Shown here one piece after another: positions 3,411 to 39,495 of a stretch of DNA of 44,430 bases. Source of the stretch: Prasinococcaceae sp. CCMP 1430 (lineage: Eukaryota; Plantae; Prasinodermophyta); the NCBI GenBank assembly GCA_013416795.1, contig RQSC01001147.1, forward strand, positions 97,270-141,699, written 5' to 3'. Under the pieces are notes generated by a model. The model was given only the letters and a program-made list of their open reading frames with translations. It was not told the origin of the DNA and made no database searches. Each line of letters begins with the position of its first letter. Positions within the stretch are counted from its first letter, which is position 1. The position numbers and the translations under genes were made by a program.

Positions 3411-4760
3411 TCAATACGGCGCGTACCGCGCCGCCGTGCCGCCTCGGTGGGGGCCGGCAGCGTGGGCGCCACCAGGCGCCCGCCCACCGGTCCCTGCGGG
3501 CGCGTATCCCAGCGCTGGTGTGTTGTGCAGCGACATGTTAGGCCCTGATGCGGAAGGAAAGGTGCCGCCCGCAGCTGCATACGTGTGGGCGCCTATGAAG
3601 TGGGCGCCTGGGGCAGTGCCTGGCATCTGCTGCATCGGCATCTGCTGCTGTGGAGCAACTGGTGCATGCTGCGCATACTGCGTATGCTGTGTCTGTGGGC
3701 CAGGTGCCGCCGCGGCGTAGCCCGAAGCACCGAATGGCAGGTACGCGTGCTGGTATGGAGCTCCCCCCGACGGAACGCCCATATGCGTCCACGGCTGCTG
3801 CGGCGGCGGTAGCGACGGATGCTGCTGCTGAAACTGCTGGAGGTGGGGCGTGACCGTCACGCCGAGAGCGCGGCTTTGGCCAGTGGTGCCATTCGCTATG
3901 TTGCACTTCAGCGGAGTATTGCCGAGCGTCTCGAACGTGCGCGCGATCGGTGGGGCTTGCTGCGCGCACCCCGCGGATTCAGGCTCAGCGTAGTGGACGA
4001 AGGCGATCGCGAGCTTGTTCGCCCCACGTGGCGGAGGTAGATCGACGGCCAGCACGGTGCCAAATTTGGCGAACGCGAGCGAGACATCGCCCGCCCGCGC
4101 GTCGAGTGGCAGCCCACTCACGTACAGCTTCGATTTCGCTTCGAGGTACCTGCCGGAGCCGTCATTCAGCCCAGCGCGCGGGTCGCGCTTGACACCGGGT
4201 GGCACCACCGAATCGTCGTTGATGTGCACCGCAGGACGTCTGCCGCAGAGGGTCACACCCTCGGCGGTCAGGATGCGGTGAGCTCGCTCCGCGAGCTCGT
4301 CGTTCCTGTACATCGCGCGGCCGGTGCCGCCATTCTTTTGCCCCGCGTACATCTTTCCCTGCGGCGGCCGAATCTTGAAGTCCACCAGCCCGACGGCGGC
4401 GCCGAGCTCTTTGAAACCTCTCTTGATGTCGTCCGTCCACGCGTGGAAGGGGAGGTTTGCCAGCCGCAGCACGTTGCGCCGAGCCGCTGCCGTCGCCTTG
4501 ATGACACCCGTCGCCGTTGCGTCAGTGGTGCCCGGAAAGAGCGCCGAAGTACTTCGACCGTCGAACTCCTTCAGGGCCCTCTCCGCGGCTGCGCGGTCGG
4601 TGTACTGGATCACTGCGGTGCCATCGCCAGGCACTTTCACGGCGTGCAGCTGGCCGTGCGGCACGCAGGCGGCGGTGACGGCGTCCTCTTTCACGCTGGT
4701 TGGAAGGCCCTCGAGGAAGATCTTGCACCCAGCCTGCGGCAGAGCAAGCAGCGCCTGCAT
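3411..4760 (-). CDS. RNA-binding protein with three RRM domains and Q/P/G-rich tail; start uncertain
   Basis: Three RNP2/RNP1-like units (KIFLEGLP..TAVIQY; NVLRLANLP..GTGRAMY; KLYVSGLP..IAFVHY). First in-frame ATG is 4760; the frame stays open to 5036 (GTG). Ends RYAPY*. Confidence 0.85.
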   Translation of the reverse strand: MQALLALPQAGCKIFLEGLPTSVKEDAVTAACVPHGQLHAVKVPGDGTAVIQYTDRAAAERALKEFDGRSTSALFPGTTDATATGVIKATAAARRNVLRLANLPFHAWTDDIKRGFKELGAAVGLVDFKIRPPQGKMYAGQKNGGTGRAMYRNDELAERAHRILTAEGVTLCGRRPAVHINDDSVVPPGVKRDPRAGLNDGSGRYLEAKSKLYVSGLPLDARAGDVSLAFAKFGTVLAVDLPPPRGANKLAIAFVHYAEPESAGCAQQAPPIARTFETLGNTPLKCNIANGTTGQSRALGVTVTPHLQQFQQQHPSLPPPQQPWTHMGVPSGGAPYQHAYLPFGASGYAAAAPGPQTQHTQYAQHAPVAPQQQMPMQQMPGTAPGAHFIGAHTYAAAGGTFPSASGPNMSLHNTPALGYAPAGTGGRAPGGAHAAGPHRGGTAARYAPY

Positions 4761-14012: not shown

Positions 14013-15665
14013 TCACTTCGCCCCGCCCCCCTTCGTCGCGTTCCCGTTGGCCGGGGCGGTGGCAGTCACGCTCCCCTCGCGCGACCTCTCCGCCCCCGCG
14101 CGATTGTAGCTCGTGAAAGCGGCCGACGCAGCGAAGAGCTTGGCCGCAGCGGTCGTCGCAGCGGGCTGCGCGGTCGCGGCGTCGTTGGCCGCTGCGCGCT
14201 GCCCGGGCGCGGGCTCGGATCCCGAGGTCGATCCCACGCCGCGCTTGCTGCCCTCGCCACCGTCATTGCCGCTACCGCTTCCTTCGCCCTCGGCGCCGTC
14301 CGACGGCGAGCGCCCTCCGTGGTCGTCGCTGCCGCTGCCGTTGCTGCCACCGCCACCGTCGCCCTTCTTGCTGCGCTCGGCAATGGAGGACGGGGGCGTG
14401 TGGGTTGCCTCGCCGGCCGCGCCCGCGCCTTTTGCGGCGCGCGCGCGCTCGGCGCTGCCGTCGCCCTCGTTGCCGCTGCCATCGCTGCCGTCGTTGCCAC
14501 TGCCGTCACCGCTTCCGCCGCCCTCGTCGTTGCCGCTGCCACTGCCGCACTCGCCGCCGCCGCCGCCGTGCGCCGTGGACTTGGTGGGCGCTCCGCCGCC
14601 GTTGGCGCCCGCGTGCGCGGCAATGCTCGTCCCACCCTTCGAGGCGCCGTTGCCGTTCGCGAGGACGTCGGGTTTCTTCTCGTGCGCGCCCGCGTCCGCG
14701 TCGACGATCGTGCTCTCCTTGCCTCCCGAGCCGTCGGTGTCAGGCGACGCAGACGACCGTCTCTTGGCGCGCTTTGCGGGTCTCTCGGCGTCCGCCGGAG
14801 CGGCGGCCGCGTCTGCGCTCGTGCCCGCGTCGCCTTTGGCAGGCCCTGCCGGCTGAGCCGCGCCGCCCGGCGCTTCTTTGTCCTGCTTTTGGGCGTTCGG
14901 AGCAGCGTGCGCCTGGGCGGCAGGGGCAGAAGCGCCGGCGGTGGGGCCTGGCTTGGTACCCGCCGCGGCGTCCTGCGCGGCCTTGGCGGCCTGCGCCGCC
15001 TGCGCCTGCGCCGCCTGCACGGCCTGCTGCTGGGCGTGCACCTGCGCCTGGACCTGCGCCTGCGCCTGGGCCTGCGCCTGGGCCGCCTGGGCCTGCGCCT
15101 GCGCTTGGGCCTGGGCGTGCGCCGCGTGTGCCTGCTGCATCATGGCCATGTGCTGCTGCATGGCGGCCGCCTGCGCCTGCGGCGCCTGCGCGCCGCTCGC
15201 CGACGCGTACGGGTTTCCCGCCGCCCCGGCCTGCATCCACGGTGCCATGCCTGCGTGCATGCCCACCGGCGGCATGCCTGGCGCGCCCCAAGGCGGGTAC
15301 GCCATGCCGGGCGGCGGCGCGGCGCCCGGCGGCATTCCATAGGGCATCATCGTGGGGGCGGCCACGGCCGCCGCCTGCGCCTGCGCGGCCTGTGCGGCCG
15401 CCTGCGCGTCGCCGCCGGCGGACCCGCCCTCTCCGTTGGCCGCGGCCTGCGCGGCCTGGGGCATGCCTTGCATCATGGCCATCTGTGGGTGGGGCATGCC
15501 CGGCGGCACGCCCATGAAGCCCGTGGCCGCCATCGGGTGCATGACCATCCCCGCGAAGGCGCCATACTGCGCGGGGTGATAGCCCAGCGCTGCCGCCTGC
15601 TGCGCCTGGGCCTGCGCCTGCATGTGCGCTTGCTGCTGCTGCTGCAAGGCTTGCGCGTTCGCCAT
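14013..15665 (-). CDS. Low-complexity Q/A/P/M-rich then G/S/D-rich protein with NLS-like PAKRAKRR; 5' end may be lost at N15692
   Basis: Long open frame with biased composition and GCC/CAG-rich codons; no folded domain recognised. No bZIP or CCT domain found downstream. Confidence 0.7.
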   Translation of the reverse strand: MANAQALQQQQQAHMQAQAQAQQAAALGYHPAQYGAFAGMVMHPMAATGFMGVPPGMPHPQMAMMQGMPQAAQAAANGEGGSAGGDAQAAAQAAQAQAAAVAAPTMMPYGMPPGAAPPPGMAYPPWGAPGMPPVGMHAGMAPWMQAGAAGNPYASASGAQAPQAQAAAMQQHMAMMQQAHAAHAQAQAQAQAQAAQAQAQAQAQVQAQVHAQQQAVQAAQAQAAQAAKAAQDAAAGTKPGPTAGASAPAAQAHAAPNAQKQDKEAPGGAAQPAGPAKGDAGTSADAAAAPADAERPAKRAKRRSSASPDTDGSGGKESTIVDADAGAHEKKPDVLANGNGASKGGTSIAAHAGANGGGAPTKSTAHGGGGGECGSGSGNDEGGGSGDGSGNDGSDGSGNEGDGSAERARAAKGAGAAGEATHTPPSSIAERSKKGDGGGGSNGSGSDDHGGRSPSDGAEGEGSGSGNDGGEGSKRGVGSTSGSEPAPGQRAAANDAATAQPAATTAAAKLFAASAAFTSYNRAGAERSREGSVTATAPANGNATKGGGAK

Positions 15666-28790: not shown

Positions 28791-29695
28791 CTATGCGTGC
28801 GCGGCGCTGGTCGCAGGGGGGTACGCGATGTCGCCGCTGCACGTGCTCTTGATGCTCGGGGGACAATCCATGAACTTGAGGTCGGTGCCCACGCAAAGCC
28901 ACACCTCGCCGACCTGGCTGCCAACGCCTTTGGCGGCCGAGCAGTGGATGGCCGGGGCGTAGCCCACCGCCTTCTCTATGGCATCGGCCATGTGCTGCGC
29001 ATCGTACTTTCTCTCGGCGCTCGGCGTTATCCCAGCGTCGCTGAGCGCGCCGTAGAGGTCTGTTTCTTGCTGCATGTCCAGCGTTGTTTGGAAGAAATCG
29101 AGCTCGCTGTTGATGAACGGGGACGCGCACGTGCCTGCCGGGGCGGCATCGGGCGTGCGAGCGCGCGGCCAGTACGTCAGAGGACGCACGCCACGGCGGG
29201 ATGCGCGCGCGCGCGCGCGCGACGAGCGACCGCTCAGGCCATCGGGCTCGGACGCACCGTGCTTGTCCCATTCGTGCTTCCAGAACTTGGTGTCCGCGCC
29301 GGAGTACGATGGCCAGTACTCGTCGAGGTCCTCCTCGATGGACGCAACCTTTGACTCGTCGAAAGGCGCGCTCTTGTCGCAGAACGAGGGGTACGAGCCG
29401 TTGTCGTAGTTGGCCCAGAGCCCGTGGATGGTGAAGTGGTTGGCGGGCGGCTGCTGCGAGCAGTGGGCGCTCGACTCGTCGCACATGGACTCGCCCCACT
29501 GCTGCACCAGTAAGAAGAAGTCGGCCTGCGCCTGGCGCAGCGGCGCGACCGCGCCCGCCGCGGCGACCCACTTCGTCCCAAGAACGCTCGCTCACGCGGC
29601 CCGATGGCGCTGGCTGCTGCGAGCGGCCGCGCGCCCTCGGCGCGTGCGACGAGCGCCAGCGCGGCGGCCGCGGCAGCCGCGGCCCTTCCCGCCAT
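28791..29695 (-). CDS. Ribonuclease T2 family, secreted; exons ?29695-29596, 29525-29258, 29134-28791
   Basis: CAS-I FTIHGLW and CAS-II FWKHEWDKHG|TCA (phase-1 intron 29257-29135); ADFFLLVQQW N-terminal strand. The signal-peptide exon is 1 nt out of phase with exon 2 (see findings). Confidence 0.9.
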
Positions 29696-30206
29696 TGCAG
29701 CTCGCCCCCGCAGCCCCGCCTCCTCTCCGCCTGGGGCCCACCACGCCCCGAGCGCCGCGTGTGGTCACACGGTAGCGCTGAGTGGAGCAGCTGAACGTGT
29801 GGGCCGCACAACTTCCGAGTTCAAAGTTCCAGGTCAGCGCGCTCGCAACAGTGAAACGACGCGTGCACGCATGCGATCGCACGTCCACGCCACGGGCATA
29901 CGAACCCTCAACACAAAACCCCTAATGTGCCTCTGCTCTGCGCGTTTCGCGTTCCGCTGTTTCCTGGTGCGCCCGCGCCTCCCCTGCGTTTCGCACTTCC
30001 GATCCCGGCCCCCCGGCCCGGATTCTGCGGAGGCCCGAAATCGCCGTCCGGAAAGCGCGGGAAAGGCGGCGCCGCCAAGGACGGGTGGGGCGAGAGCGGT
30101 GGAGGGACAGAGAGGGACTAACTTCCGACTTCCGAGGGTGCGGGGCGCCCGCTCGCGCCACACGGCGCGCGGCGGCCGCCGGCGCCCCACACACCCGCCC
30201 GTCGCC

Positions 30207-30893
30207 ATGGGAAGCAAGGACGAGGACGCCTACGCGGCGCTCCTGGCCACGCCCGCCGAGGACGAGGACTGCACCACGTGAGGCATCGACGGGGCGTGCG
30301 ACGAGGACACCGCCGTGGCCGTCCCTCCCGCGCCCCCCAGCGGCAGGGGCCCCGCCGCCCCGCAGGGCAACGGCGAGCTGTGGTCCGCGCTCTTCACGGT
30401 CGCGGTCTCGGTGCCCGCGCTACTGGGCTCGTGATGCTGGCCTCTCCTCTTGGCAGGCGTGCTAGGCGTGACCGCCTCAGCAGCCGCCAAGAGCTTCAGC
30501 CACTCGATCTCCGCAGCGGTCACGCTGGCCTGCCTCACCAACCTCACGCAGTATGTGCACTGGAAGGGGGTGACTTCTAAGCGCCGCGGTTCCTTCTGGC
30601 GCCGCCACGGTCCGACCATCCTGTGCGCCCTCGCGGTCCCTCTGGTGATGCTCGACCTCACGCGCCATCTGCTGCAGGACGCGGAGATCTGGACTGGGCC
30701 CTCGAGCCACATGTTCCGCCCCGACTGCTCTCCCACGACGGGCCTCTCTGGCATCAGGTGCCTCAGCTGGACCGGCTTCTTTTTCACCATTGTCGGGACC
30801 TACGCGGGCTTCGCGCTGCTGCTCATCGGCGTCTTCTGGAGCGCCGGCTTTGTCGGCAAGGTGGAGAGGGCATGGGCACTCGCACGCCGCTAG
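30207..30893 (+). CDS. MSP: Membrane selenoprotein (MSP family), 228 aa, two in-frame UGA read as Sec (U25, U76)
   Basis: ATG 30207, TGA 30279-81, TGA 30432-34 and TAG 30891-93 are all in one frame, with coding-like sequence throughout: DCTTUGIDGAC...ELWSALFTVAVSVPALLGSUCWPLLL...TRHLLQD..W...CLSWTGFFFTIVGTYAGFALL. Downstream SECIS present. Confidence 0.88.
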
Positions 30894-31027
30894 CAGACGT
30901 AGATAGCGCCTGCGCGCGCGCCCTGGCGCGGCCCAAGAGAGAGAGAGAGAACATCAAGAATGCACGCGCAAGCAGCTCGGGGCAATCGCCCCGAGAGGGC
31001 TGCTCGTCGACACGCAGCGAGCGACGC

Positions 31028-31106
31028 GCACCGTCCCATGACGCGCCGGTGGTAAAGCGGCCCTCGGCCGCATCGCCGGATGCTGAAAACACACACACGA
31101 CGGTGC
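31028..31106 (+). promoter_or_regulatory. Eukaryotic type II SECIS element in the MSP 3' UTR
   Basis: Helix I GCACCGUC(31028-35)/GACGGUGC(31099-106); AUGAC(31038-42) opposite UGAA(31084-87) gives the G.A/A.G quartet; 11-bp helix II with one bulged A; unpaired AAA(31054-56); mini-stem GCGGCC/GGCCGC. Confidence 0.9.
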
Positions 31107-31209
31107 CACTCGCAGCGGGCCGCACGGGCCACCCGCGCGGCCACAAGCGACCGTGTTGCACAAGAGTAATGATCAAGCATTGTATGAGTACACAGCGCCG
31201 TCGAGGCGC

Positions 31210-33075: not shown

Positions 33076-33254
33076 NNNNNNNNNNNNNNNNNNNNNNNNN
33101 NNNNNNNNNNNNNNNNNNNNNNNNNNNNNNNNNNNNNNNNNNNNNNNNNNNNNNNNNNNNNNNNNNNNNNNNNNNNNNNNNNNNNNNNNNNNNNNNNNNN
33201 NNNNNNNNNNNNNNNNNNNNNNNNNNNNNNNNNNNNNNNNNNNNNNNNNNNNNN
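33076..33254. other. Assembly gap (179 N), probably containing the NF-YB first exon
   Basis: Run of N. Confidence 0.98.
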
Positions 33255-36410: not shown

Positions 36411-36470
36411 NNNNNNNNNNNNNNNNNNNNNNNNNNNNNNNNNNNNNNNNNNNNNNNNNNNNNNNNNNNN
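36411..36470. other. Assembly gap (60 N), probably containing TrpRS 5' exon(s)
   Basis: Run of N. Confidence 0.98.
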
Positions 36471-37802: not shown

Positions 37803-38894
37803 TCACGCGTGCGCGTGCGCGACGCCCGCGCTCCGGCGCTCGGCAGCTGCGATGGCTGCAAGGTGCACGCACAGCGCCAGCGTCACGGCCGTGATGAAGG
37901 CGCCGCTCACGCCGCCAAGCAAGTACACTGACATGAGGCATCCCCAGCCGCTCACCACCGCGCCCCAGGTGCTGCCGAGCAGCCACACTCGGTCGCGCAG
38001 GAAAAGCGCCCTCGGCATCATGAGCGCGTTGCCCACCGCACCGATGAGCACGCTCGAAACGCTCAGCCCCGCGAGGGCCTCCGGCGACCGCAGGTTTTGC
38101 GCTATTTGCGAGACGCCGAGGACCATGAAGTGGAGCGTCGCCACCCAAGCTCCGACGCCCACCCATGCTGAGCCCAGCTGGGCGCTGCCTGAGCTCCCAT
38201 CCGCCAAACTCACGACGGCGCGCCGGCGCGCAGCAAGCGCGAGCGCGCACGCCGTCGCCGCCGCCGCCGCTGTGGCGGCGGCTGACGCGCCGCCGTCCAA
38301 ACAAGCCCGCAGCAGGACGGCAGGCAGCGTCGTCGCCCCGCCAAGCACCGCCGCCGCATACCACGCGCCTTGCACCGCCTGCATCCACTGCGCTCCGCCG
38401 CTCCGGCCCTGCGCCTCGCGGCCGCCCAGCAGCGCGCTGACGTTGATCGCCAGGCCCAGCGAGGTCGCGCAGAGCACCGCGACGAGCAGCGGCGCCGGCA
38501 TGTGCCCCGCCACGCAAATCTGCGTGAGCACGGCGGCGTTTCCGAGCACGCCGACCACCTGCACGCCCGCTCCCGCGCGCTCCTCCTCCCGCACGAAGTA
38601 CGACAGCATGAGCATGTTGCCCACGAGGCTCGCGGCGTACCCGGTCCACGGCAGCACGCTGAGCGCGCTGCCCGCGCCCGCCGATATGTTCGCGGCGTTC
38701 TTGAGTATTTGTGGCAACGTGAGCCCGAGGAACGCGACCGTGGACAGGTTCACGAGCCATTCCGAGGTGCGCCCAAAGCGCTCGCGGGCGGCCGCGGCCG
38801 GGTGGACGCTGTCATCGCCCCGGCCACTGCGTCCATCGTCCTCGGCGCTCGTCGCGAGCTGCGCGGCCGAGGCCGAGCGTGGACGCAGCCGCAT
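37803..38894 (-). CDS. MEX1: Plastid envelope maltose exporter MEX1-like
   Basis: LPQILKN, PWTGYAASLVGNMLMLSYF, QVVGV, AGHMP, VSQIAQNLRSPE.LAGLS and GNALMMPRALFLRD.VWL.GS.W match MEX1/RCP1 motifs; multi-TM hydrophobicity. Start uncertain. Confidence 0.88.
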   Translation of the reverse strand: MRLRPRSASAAQLATSAEDDGRSGRGDDSVHPAAAARERFGRTSEWLVNLSTVAFLGLTLPQILKNAANISAGAGSALSVLPWTGYAASLVGNMLMLSYFVREEERAGAGVQVVGVLGNAAVLTQICVAGHMPAPLLVAVLCATSLGLAINVSALLGGREAQGRSGGAQWMQAVQGAWYAAAVLGGATTLPAVLLRACLDGGASAAATAAAAATACALALAARRRAVVSLADGSSGSAQLGSAWVGVGAWVATLHFMVLGVSQIAQNLRSPEALAGLSVSSVLIGAVGNALMMPRALFLRDRVWLLGSTWGAVVSGWGCLMSVYLLGGVSGAFITAVTLALCVHLAAIAAAERRSAGVAHAHA

Positions 38895-39180
38895 CCGCCC
38901 CCACCGACGAGCGCGGGGACATCATCGTCGCTCTCGTCCCCGCTCTGCTTGGCTCGCTGAGTCGCCTCGTCGGCCGCCGTGCGCGCGAGCGCACGAGCGC
39001 GCTTCGCCGCCTTCCGGTGCTTCTTCGTGTTGAGGGCGCCGCGCATCGACGCGTCGCGCGGTGCCGACAGCGCGTCCTGCAGCGCCGTGTACTGCAGGAT
39101 CTGTGTGCCACCGCTCCCGCGGAAGAGGACCGGCAGTGCTTTTGTCACGCCGCCCACAGTCAAGTGCGCCTTGTTCGCGC
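38750..39180 (-). CDS. 3' fragment of an unknown gene starting at the single-N gap (39184); open frame overlaps the MEX1 start
   Basis: After CAG at 39183-39181 the frame reads GANKAHLTVGGVTKALPVLFRGSGGTQILQYTALQDAL...TKKHRKAAK...SGDESDDDVPALV, which is protein-like. No family recognised. Confidence 0.45.
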
Positions 39181-39477: not shown

Positions 39478-39495
39478 NNNNNNNNNNNNNNNNNN
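39478..39495. other. Assembly gap (18 N) followed by a (GC)n run; probably contains the cyclophilin first exon
   Basis: Run of N, then about 13 GC dinucleotides. Confidence 0.95.

Follow-up and report, generated by a model that had tools for sequence, protein, structure and literature searches.

We analysed a 44,430-nucleotide stretch of DNA (hereafter the window) from the green alga Prasinococcaceae sp. CCMP 1430 and found that its forward strand carries a gene of the MSP (membrane selenoprotein) family. The coding sequence (CDS) is a single exon, running from an ATG at 30207 to a TAG stop at 30891–30893, and it specifies a protein of 228 residues with two predicted selenocysteine (Sec) residues. 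It is followed by a type II hairpin resembling a Sec insertion sequence (SECIS) element, at 31028–31105. Taken together, the evidence makes it very probable that 30207–30893 is a genuine, expressed, single-exon member of the family in which both UGAs are decoded as Sec through this one SECIS.

Translation of the window placed two TGAs in this frame. The first, at 30279–30281, stands in the context E-D-E-D-C-T-T-*, giving an N-terminal C-T-T-U motif in an acidic tail (30270–30281; Cys22 and Sec25). The second, at 30432–30434, stands in the context L-L-G-S-*-C-W-P-L-L-L-A-G and forms the family signature G-S-U-C-W-P (30426–30443; Sec76 and Cys77), hereafter the UC motif. A preliminary description of this DNA, made from its letters, had proposed one frame through both TGAs, and our translation agrees. 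It had also noted that the list of open reading frames (ORFs) splits the gene, and the two pieces lie at 29604–30281 and 30450–30893. In the protein databases that we searched, the closest entries begin 3′ of the second TGA. Four contigs from TARA metagenomes, with 97–98% identity to the gene, keep both TGAs and contain no indels in the CDS, yet have indels in the untranslated regions (UTRs). The GC content of the window is approximately 69%; the genome of Prasinoderma coloniale, which has 69.8% GC, encodes many selenoproteins (PMC7455551).

Consistent with expression from a single exon, sequencing run X1, which is probably RNA and contains 91% of the words sampled, yielded a contig of 1016 nucleotides that equals positions 30177–31192 of the window on the forward strand with 0 mismatches and 0 gaps at a depth of 152. 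This contig comprises a 5′ UTR of about 30 nucleotides, the CDS and a 3′ UTR that includes the SECIS. Depth in the same run was 0 over the 340 nucleotides upstream (29800–30141) and 11.5 on the convergent neighbouring gene, a profile that a DNA library would not produce. As the contig is colinear with the genome from end to end, the mRNA retains both UGAs and the SECIS, with nothing spliced out. A second run gave a contig spanning 30346–31135, and a relative from a metatranscriptome retains the sequence ...AGA-UGA-CWPLL. Within the X1 contig, no ATG other than the one at 30207 precedes the UC motif, so a ribosome must read through the UGA at 30279 to make the conserved domain.

These results speak against the possibility that the TGAs are removed by splicing or that two nonsense mutations have made the locus a pseudogene, which we consider extremely improbable. 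Both TGAs do lie in GTGA contexts, introns are frequent in green algal genes and the Haematococcus homologue has several. However, the candidate introns (30278–30365 and 30431–30456) would disrupt the frame, and both are retained in the transcript contig, as expected from the preference of the preliminary description for recoding over splicing. Moreover, both TGAs occupy homologous positions across distant taxa, and in the four TARA variants indels are confined to the UTRs.

The protein encoded by the recoded frame belongs to a family that was defined in Ostreococcus, Chlamydomonas, Volvox and Dictyostelium by Lobanov et al. 2007 (PMC2375036), who wrote that MSP "had two Sec residues". In their supplementary alignment, each of the five species has LVGSUCWPLL and the Dictyostelium protein also has an N-terminal GEDCEGGVU, and it was for Dictyostelium only that a 75Se band of matching size was reported (PMC2375036). 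Residues 77–228 of the window protein match the Haematococcus lacustris "Membrane selenoprotein" in UniRef (P0005) with an E value of 5.2e-35 and 53% identity, and an exhaustive HMMER search recovered 359 clusters (50% identity) at E ≤ 1e-3. The window protein contains the conserved DLTRHLLQD (residues 150–158), in which the D, R, H and D of the D..RH...D motif are invariant or at least 90% conserved in the family alignment. It also contains the loop motif F-R-P-D-C ... R-C-L-S, and the equivalents of the two cysteines in this motif (Cys174 and Cys185) are invariant in 12 sequences. Because every conserved element of the published MSP alignment is present, the protein belongs to the family and is more than a look-alike, which is a stronger outcome than the resemblance of the transmembrane (TM) part to MSP that had been noted from the DNA letters.

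This assignment also sets the limits of what is new. The preliminary description implied that a protein of this kind had not been seen before, which does not hold: MSP was described in 2007, with two Sec residues in Dictyostelium and the first of them in an N-terminal C-x4-U (PMC2375036). The gene in the window is therefore a sound addition to a known two-Sec family and not a new kind of protein. It shares with the published MSPs the sequence LxGxUCWP(L/V)L with Sec, the D..RH.LQD motif, the Y/F-R-x-x-C...C-L-S loop pair, a length of about 170–230 residues, a multi-pass membrane topology and a SECIS in the 3′ UTR. Whereas the green algal MSPs of 2007 were modelled with one Sec, the window gene has two, like that of Dictyostelium. 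In both of these genes the two Sec codons lie in one mRNA, the second Sec is in GSUCWP and the first is near a Cys in an acidic tail (GEDCEGGVU in Dictyostelium, EDEDCTTU in the window). The two differ in the spacing of the tail pair (C-x4-U in Dictyostelium, C-x2-U in the window), in lineage (Amoebozoa as opposed to a green alga) and in the SECIS, as the Dictyostelium elements were reported with UGUA before the core (PMC2375036), whereas the window has CCC-AUGA-C. According to PMC7539508, algae also have UxxU SELENOW and multi-Sec PDI_e proteins in which several UGAs are recoded by one 3′ UTR SECIS. The Sec residues described there are clustered in one motif, whereas those of the window protein stand 51 residues from each other, probably on either side of the membrane.

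We then compared the two Sec positions across the family. Using a degenerate DNA pattern for P-A-L-x-G-x-TGA-C-W-P, we found at least 120 metagenome loci. Among the matches listed, 42 loci have an MSP-like downstream ORF (38 of them non-redundant), and 36 non-redundant loci have at least 25 in-frame residues ahead of helix 1. Of these 36, 30 have another in-frame TGA, located in an acidic tail of the [D/E]-C-x2-U type (15 loci) or the C-x4-U type (15 loci). A tail C..U with an in-frame TGA also occurs in three further relatives (L009–L011). In several full-length database entries both positions are given as "W" (EEECTTW ... LIGAWCWP), where the DNA reads TGA; AT-rich relatives have TGA at both homologous positions and TGG for true Trp. 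Homologues of the Cys type have GSCCWP at the UC site, and their tails carry CxxC, CxxxxC or CxC at the N terminus (PECPVCP, NCEYGNC) or at the C terminus (GEDCNCEV, GEDCGCEV, CETC). Thus, TGA or Cys aligns at both positions in many relatives, which is the homologue comparison that the preliminary description had called for. Three of the Cys-type homologues (P0056, P0109 and P0140, with CCWPSL) are fused to low-complexity C-terminal extensions of 200–500 residues.

The tail comparison bears on whether only the UGA of the UC motif is decoded as Sec, with the first UGA ending a 24-codon upstream ORF and the protein starting at a non-AUG codon or by reinitiation. Such an arrangement would fit the published Ostreococcus, Chlamydomonas and Volvox models, which have one Sec and no N-terminal C..U, and the 6 of 36 metagenomic relatives, among the matches listed, that lack the motif. 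Against it, there is no in-frame AUG from 30282 to the UC motif, and the acidic C-x2/4-UGA in the other 30 is in frame with the downstream domain although the linkers vary greatly in both length and sequence. The Cys homologues, too, have Cys there, as CxxC or CxxxxC, and the reported two-Sec Dictyostelium protein gave a 75Se band of matching size (PMC2375036). We therefore judge a single Sec in the window protein to be very improbable. The tail Sec recurs regularly across the family, the first UGA of the window is its homologue, and from these alignments the predicted tail Sec is the rule in the family and not an oddity of Dictyostelium. What is new here is this family-wide pattern of a tail Sec/Cys pair, together with a confidently predicted orphan fold described below.

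In Haematococcus lacustris, the annotated "membrane selenoprotein" of 122 residues begins after the UC codon (L007, 3377–3450 and approximately 3900–4030), and GS-TGA-CWPLLLAG lies immediately upstream of the annotated start. Approximately 500 nucleotides further upstream there is a candidate first exon opening with ATG, MSDPELGTPLLVDEGCAAGA-TGA-PMPKR, which contains a C-x4-TGA and is followed by GT. These features suggest that the public Haematococcus MSP model is truncated, and the one-Sec models published for other green algae may merit the same upstream check.

RNA folding placed all parts of a type II SECIS in the hairpin at 31028–31105 on the forward strand. In helix I, 31028–31035 pairs with 31098–31105. 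The core consists of AUGA (31038–41) opposite UGA (31084–86) in an internal loop. Helix II has a 12-nucleotide 5′ arm, 3+8 base pairs and one bulged A (31080) on its 3′ side; an unpaired AAA (31054–56) stands exactly 12 nucleotides past the AUGA, and an apical mini-stem of 6 base pairs (31057–62 with 31066–71) closes on a 3-nucleotide loop. The folding energy of 31015–31110 was -41.6 kcal/mol (z -2.68). We scanned both strands of the window with a strict pattern, which demands an AUGA core, AA 10–13 nucleotides later, a 3′-side GA, a 7-base-pair helix I and no more than one unpaired position in helix II. The scan returned one site only, 31028–31105, whereas dinucleotide shuffles contained 0.02 strict sites on average, with any site in 2 of 100 shuffles. 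The preliminary description had located a type II SECIS downstream of the stop; the fold, the single strict site, the position inside the transcript and the layout in relatives all agree with it.

Relatives of the gene preserve the architecture of this element. The variant C31047>U, seen in relatives, leaves the SECIS pair as G-U. A relative of 73% identity (L005) keeps CCC-AUGA-C, the 12-nucleotide spacing to the A-run, the bulged A of the 3′ arm and (C/U)GA, so that its SECIS has the same architecture as that of the window with different helix sequences. Closer prasinophyte-like relatives share (A/G)UGACGCGC...GUAAAG, also given as (A/G)UGACGCGCGCC...GUAAAG, plus the apical stem, and the window SECIS, AUGACGCGCCGGUGGUAAAG, closely resembles this (A/G)UGACGCGCGCC...GUAAAG form. 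Helix II covaries in a set of 20 homologue SECIS candidates. The closest marine relatives (L049, L056, L064, L074, L115 and L127) have a GUGA core, not the AUGA of the window, in agreement with the conserved G that the SECIS elements of Ostreococcus were reported to have (Lobanov et al. 2007, PMC2375036). A lax scan found 4 sites in the window against 0.57 expected; the sites at 15541 (+), 37481 (+) and 25739 (-) lack a proper helix II on folding, lie inside long ORFs and are probably chance matches. The same applies to a covariance-model match at 38882–38935 on the reverse strand (E 1.5), which has no proper helix II and lies within a long ORF. No tRNA, and hence no tRNA-Sec, is present in the window.

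To describe the membrane part we combined hydropathy, the family alignment and a predicted structure. Hydropathy marked residues 58–94 (with UC in mid-stretch), 134–156 and 188–220 of the window protein as hydrophobic. As a proxy for folding we used P0066, a natural Cys homologue with CxxC at its N terminus and CC at the UC position, and modelled it with AF2 from a 95-sequence alignment. The model has a mean pLDDT of 86.5 and a pTM of 0.73, with helices at residues 26–46, 50–57, 64–91, 95–119, 148–173 and 175–183, and a tail that has no secondary structure (pLDDT 57–70). Projected onto the window protein, TM helix 1 would span residues 57–75 (30375–30431; P0066 helix 26–46 and hydropathy), and the hydrophobic segment after UC, residues 78–94 (30438–30488), would form a short helix and coil that is probably re-entrant (P0066 helix 50–57 and hydropathy). 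TM helix 2 would comprise residues 96–119 (30492–30563; P0066 helix 64–91 and the alignment), followed by a K/R-rich loop of residues 120–135 (30564–30611), which its charge bias suggests is cytosolic. TM helix 3 (30612–30680) ends in D-x-x-R-H-x-x-x-D (residues 150–158; 30654–30680) according to the alignment and the P0066 model. The loop with the invariant Cys174 and Cys185, in (Y/F)-R-x-x-C ... C-L-S, was placed at 30714–30767 by the alignment of 12 sequences. TM helix 4 and a short basic amphipathic C-terminal tail, predicted from hydropathy, the P0066 model and charge, complete the protein (30768–30890).

The model thus points to a protein with probably four TM helices, in which the CC/UC site directly follows helix 1 and precedes a short helix that is probably re-entrant. 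Across the family, the loop between helices 2 and 3 is basic, with a mean of 4.0 K/R and 0.4 D/E in about 17 residues, and the C-terminal tail is basic too, so the positive-inside rule would place both in the cytosol. With four helices and a cytosolic C-terminal tail, the N-terminal tail would likewise be cytosolic, and the UC site, the D..RH...D motif and the loop Cys pair would be on the far side, so that the membrane would separate the tail from the UC site. With an even number of helices both termini lie on one face, which would explain why the tail Cys pair is found at either terminus. The preliminary description called the CxxU "thioredoxin-like". The motif spacing supports this term, but the fold does not: the tail is acidic, variable, probably disordered and modelled at low confidence, half of the relatives have C-x4-U, Pfam gave no match on the tail and the modelled P0066 tail shows no secondary structure. 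Many MSP tails contain an acidic-x-x-(x)-P-L-L or P-L-I motif near the Cys-Sec pair (DPLL, TPLM, KKPLL, EIPLL; seen in P0006, P0010, P0011, P0022, P0066, P0099 and L007 3377–3420), and the window has AALLATP at 30207–30260. By analogy, this tail motif resembles an acidic dileucine sorting signal, which would be in keeping with a tail in the cytosol and with targeting to endolysosomes or vacuoles.

Searches with domain models and with the predicted fold retrieved no significant match outside the family. Pfam has no model for MSP, as judged from scans of the window protein and six full-length relatives: three pieces of the window protein matched nothing, and in the six relatives MerT, MerC and MerF were not matched at E ≤ 10. 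Scattered sub-threshold matches to TrkH, DUF1218 and Ndc1 in the six relatives (E ≤ 10) were rejected as chance. We also rejected a match of zf-LITAF to residues 12–57 of P0066 (E 0.0077; 16.8 bits against a cut-off of 23.8), which was limited to this one member and is driven by its CxxC, hydrophobic helix and CC. Among AFDB clusters there was no significant match outside the family; the first was a MerC-domain model (E 0.5, TM 0.46), and a DsbB model reached no better than E 1.5 with a TM of approximately 0.2. Thus, for MerT/MerC/MerF, DsbB, VKOR and LITAF we detected sub-threshold matches only and no sequence or fold similarity.

Several points weigh against the reading developed so far. First, the type of run X1 is a guess, although the depth profile and the discrete ends of the contig favour RNA. 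Second, Rfam models gave no SECIS match at E ≤ 10, either at the locus or in the whole window. Rfam also failed to match a SECIS downstream of the Haematococcus gene. We took the missing matches to reflect low sensitivity for algal SECIS elements rather than a true absence. When the 20 homologue candidates were made into a covariance model (R1), the site ranked first in the window, with a score of only 12.5 bits (E 0.73); the bulged A shifts the register in the model. In addition, the covariation of helix II is partly circular because the homologue set was chosen by a pairing criterion. Third, the region around UC is the least confident of the membrane part of the P0066 model (pLDDT 72–80), and a possible alternative topology with five helices would move the UC site to the other face. 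Fourth, the MSP model found nothing significant in the PDB with Foldseek (E > 1), no significant match outside the family in a VIA wide fold search (Z ≤ 7.4) and none in the ESM atlas, whether searched by shape (TM < 0.5) or by features. Finally, the mechanism considered next is inferred throughout.

A literature search found no functional study of MSP, and the family is not mentioned in Liang et al. 2019. In our preferred reading, a thiol/selenol active site on the non-cytosolic face would be formed by the UC site together with the D/R/H/D cluster and the loop Cys pair, with the mobile acidic tail pair facing the cytosol. The tail pair would pass electrons, or a thiophilic ligand, to and from a soluble partner and, somehow, the membrane site, which would make MSP a thiol/selenol oxidoreductase or hand-off protein of the membrane. 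In proteins such as DsbD/CcdA, DsbB and VKOR, several conserved Cys pairs are spread over membrane helices, loops and mobile domains. MSP resembles them by functional analogy only, as we detected no sequence or fold similarity. The putative relay from a soluble CxxU to a membrane UC that had been suggested for this gene is possible; with tail and UC site on opposite faces, it would have to cross the bilayer, and DsbD/CcdA and Mer transporters perform comparable transmembrane transfers. That the tail Cys-x2/4-Sec is an ancestral and near-universal partner of the membrane Sec-Cys on the opposite face, and that the two form a selenium-dependent transmembrane relay, is a tentative proposal with a modest chance of being correct.

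Another possibility is that MSP, instead of being a redox enzyme, handles thiophilic metals or metalloids (Hg, Cu, Cd, Zn or selenium itself) and passes the ligand between the Sec-Cys and the tail pair in the manner of MerT, MerF or MerC. MerT and MerF combine a vicinal Cys pair at a membrane helix with a loop pair and a flexible tail pair, and the vicinal (Sec/Cys)-Cys, loop pair and tail pair of MSP mirror this logic. The MerC-domain model that came first among AFDB matches outside the family points in the same direction, as does the sub-threshold match of P0066 to LITAF, a zinc-binding, membrane-anchored domain. However, the MerC and LITAF matches are both below significance, Pfam MerT, MerC and MerF were unmatched in the six members, and the LITAF match is seen in one member and needs a short linker that other members lack. 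We regard a role in metal handling as rather doubtful.

Outside the MSP gene, an RNase T2 family gene (Pfam E 1e-47) lies upstream on the opposite strand at 28791–29507. A metatranscriptome run (X5) gave a contig of depth 8.4 over 29903–30049. This stretch precedes the start of the MSP transcript and has no coverage in the culture transcriptome; the contig may derive from the UTR of the RNase T2 gene, which is divergent, or reflect a strain difference. DNA nearly identical to the window is present in TARA ocean metagenomes, and one TARA contig (L001) shares the gene order of a DUF1751 protein, RNase T2, MSP and two minus-strand genes. For a neighbouring gene, the best named matches are from green algae at approximately 40% identity. 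These matches and the GC content fit a Prasinoderma-like marine green picoalga. Runs of N occur in the window at 33076–33254, 36411–36470 and 39478–39495 (259 N in total), none of them close to the MSP gene.

For the genome of this alga, the outcome is a correctly modelled two-Sec gene of a kind that ordinary ORF and gene callers fragment. The known picture of Sec decoding is unchanged by it. MSP has been functionally uncharacterised since 2007, and the tail Sec as a rule, the tail Cys pair at either terminus and a confident fold without a solved relative offer handles on its mechanism. If the proposed relay were true, MSP would represent an unrecognised class of eukaryotic relay, and its cargo across the membrane would be reducing equivalents or a thiophilic ligand (selenium or mercury, for example).

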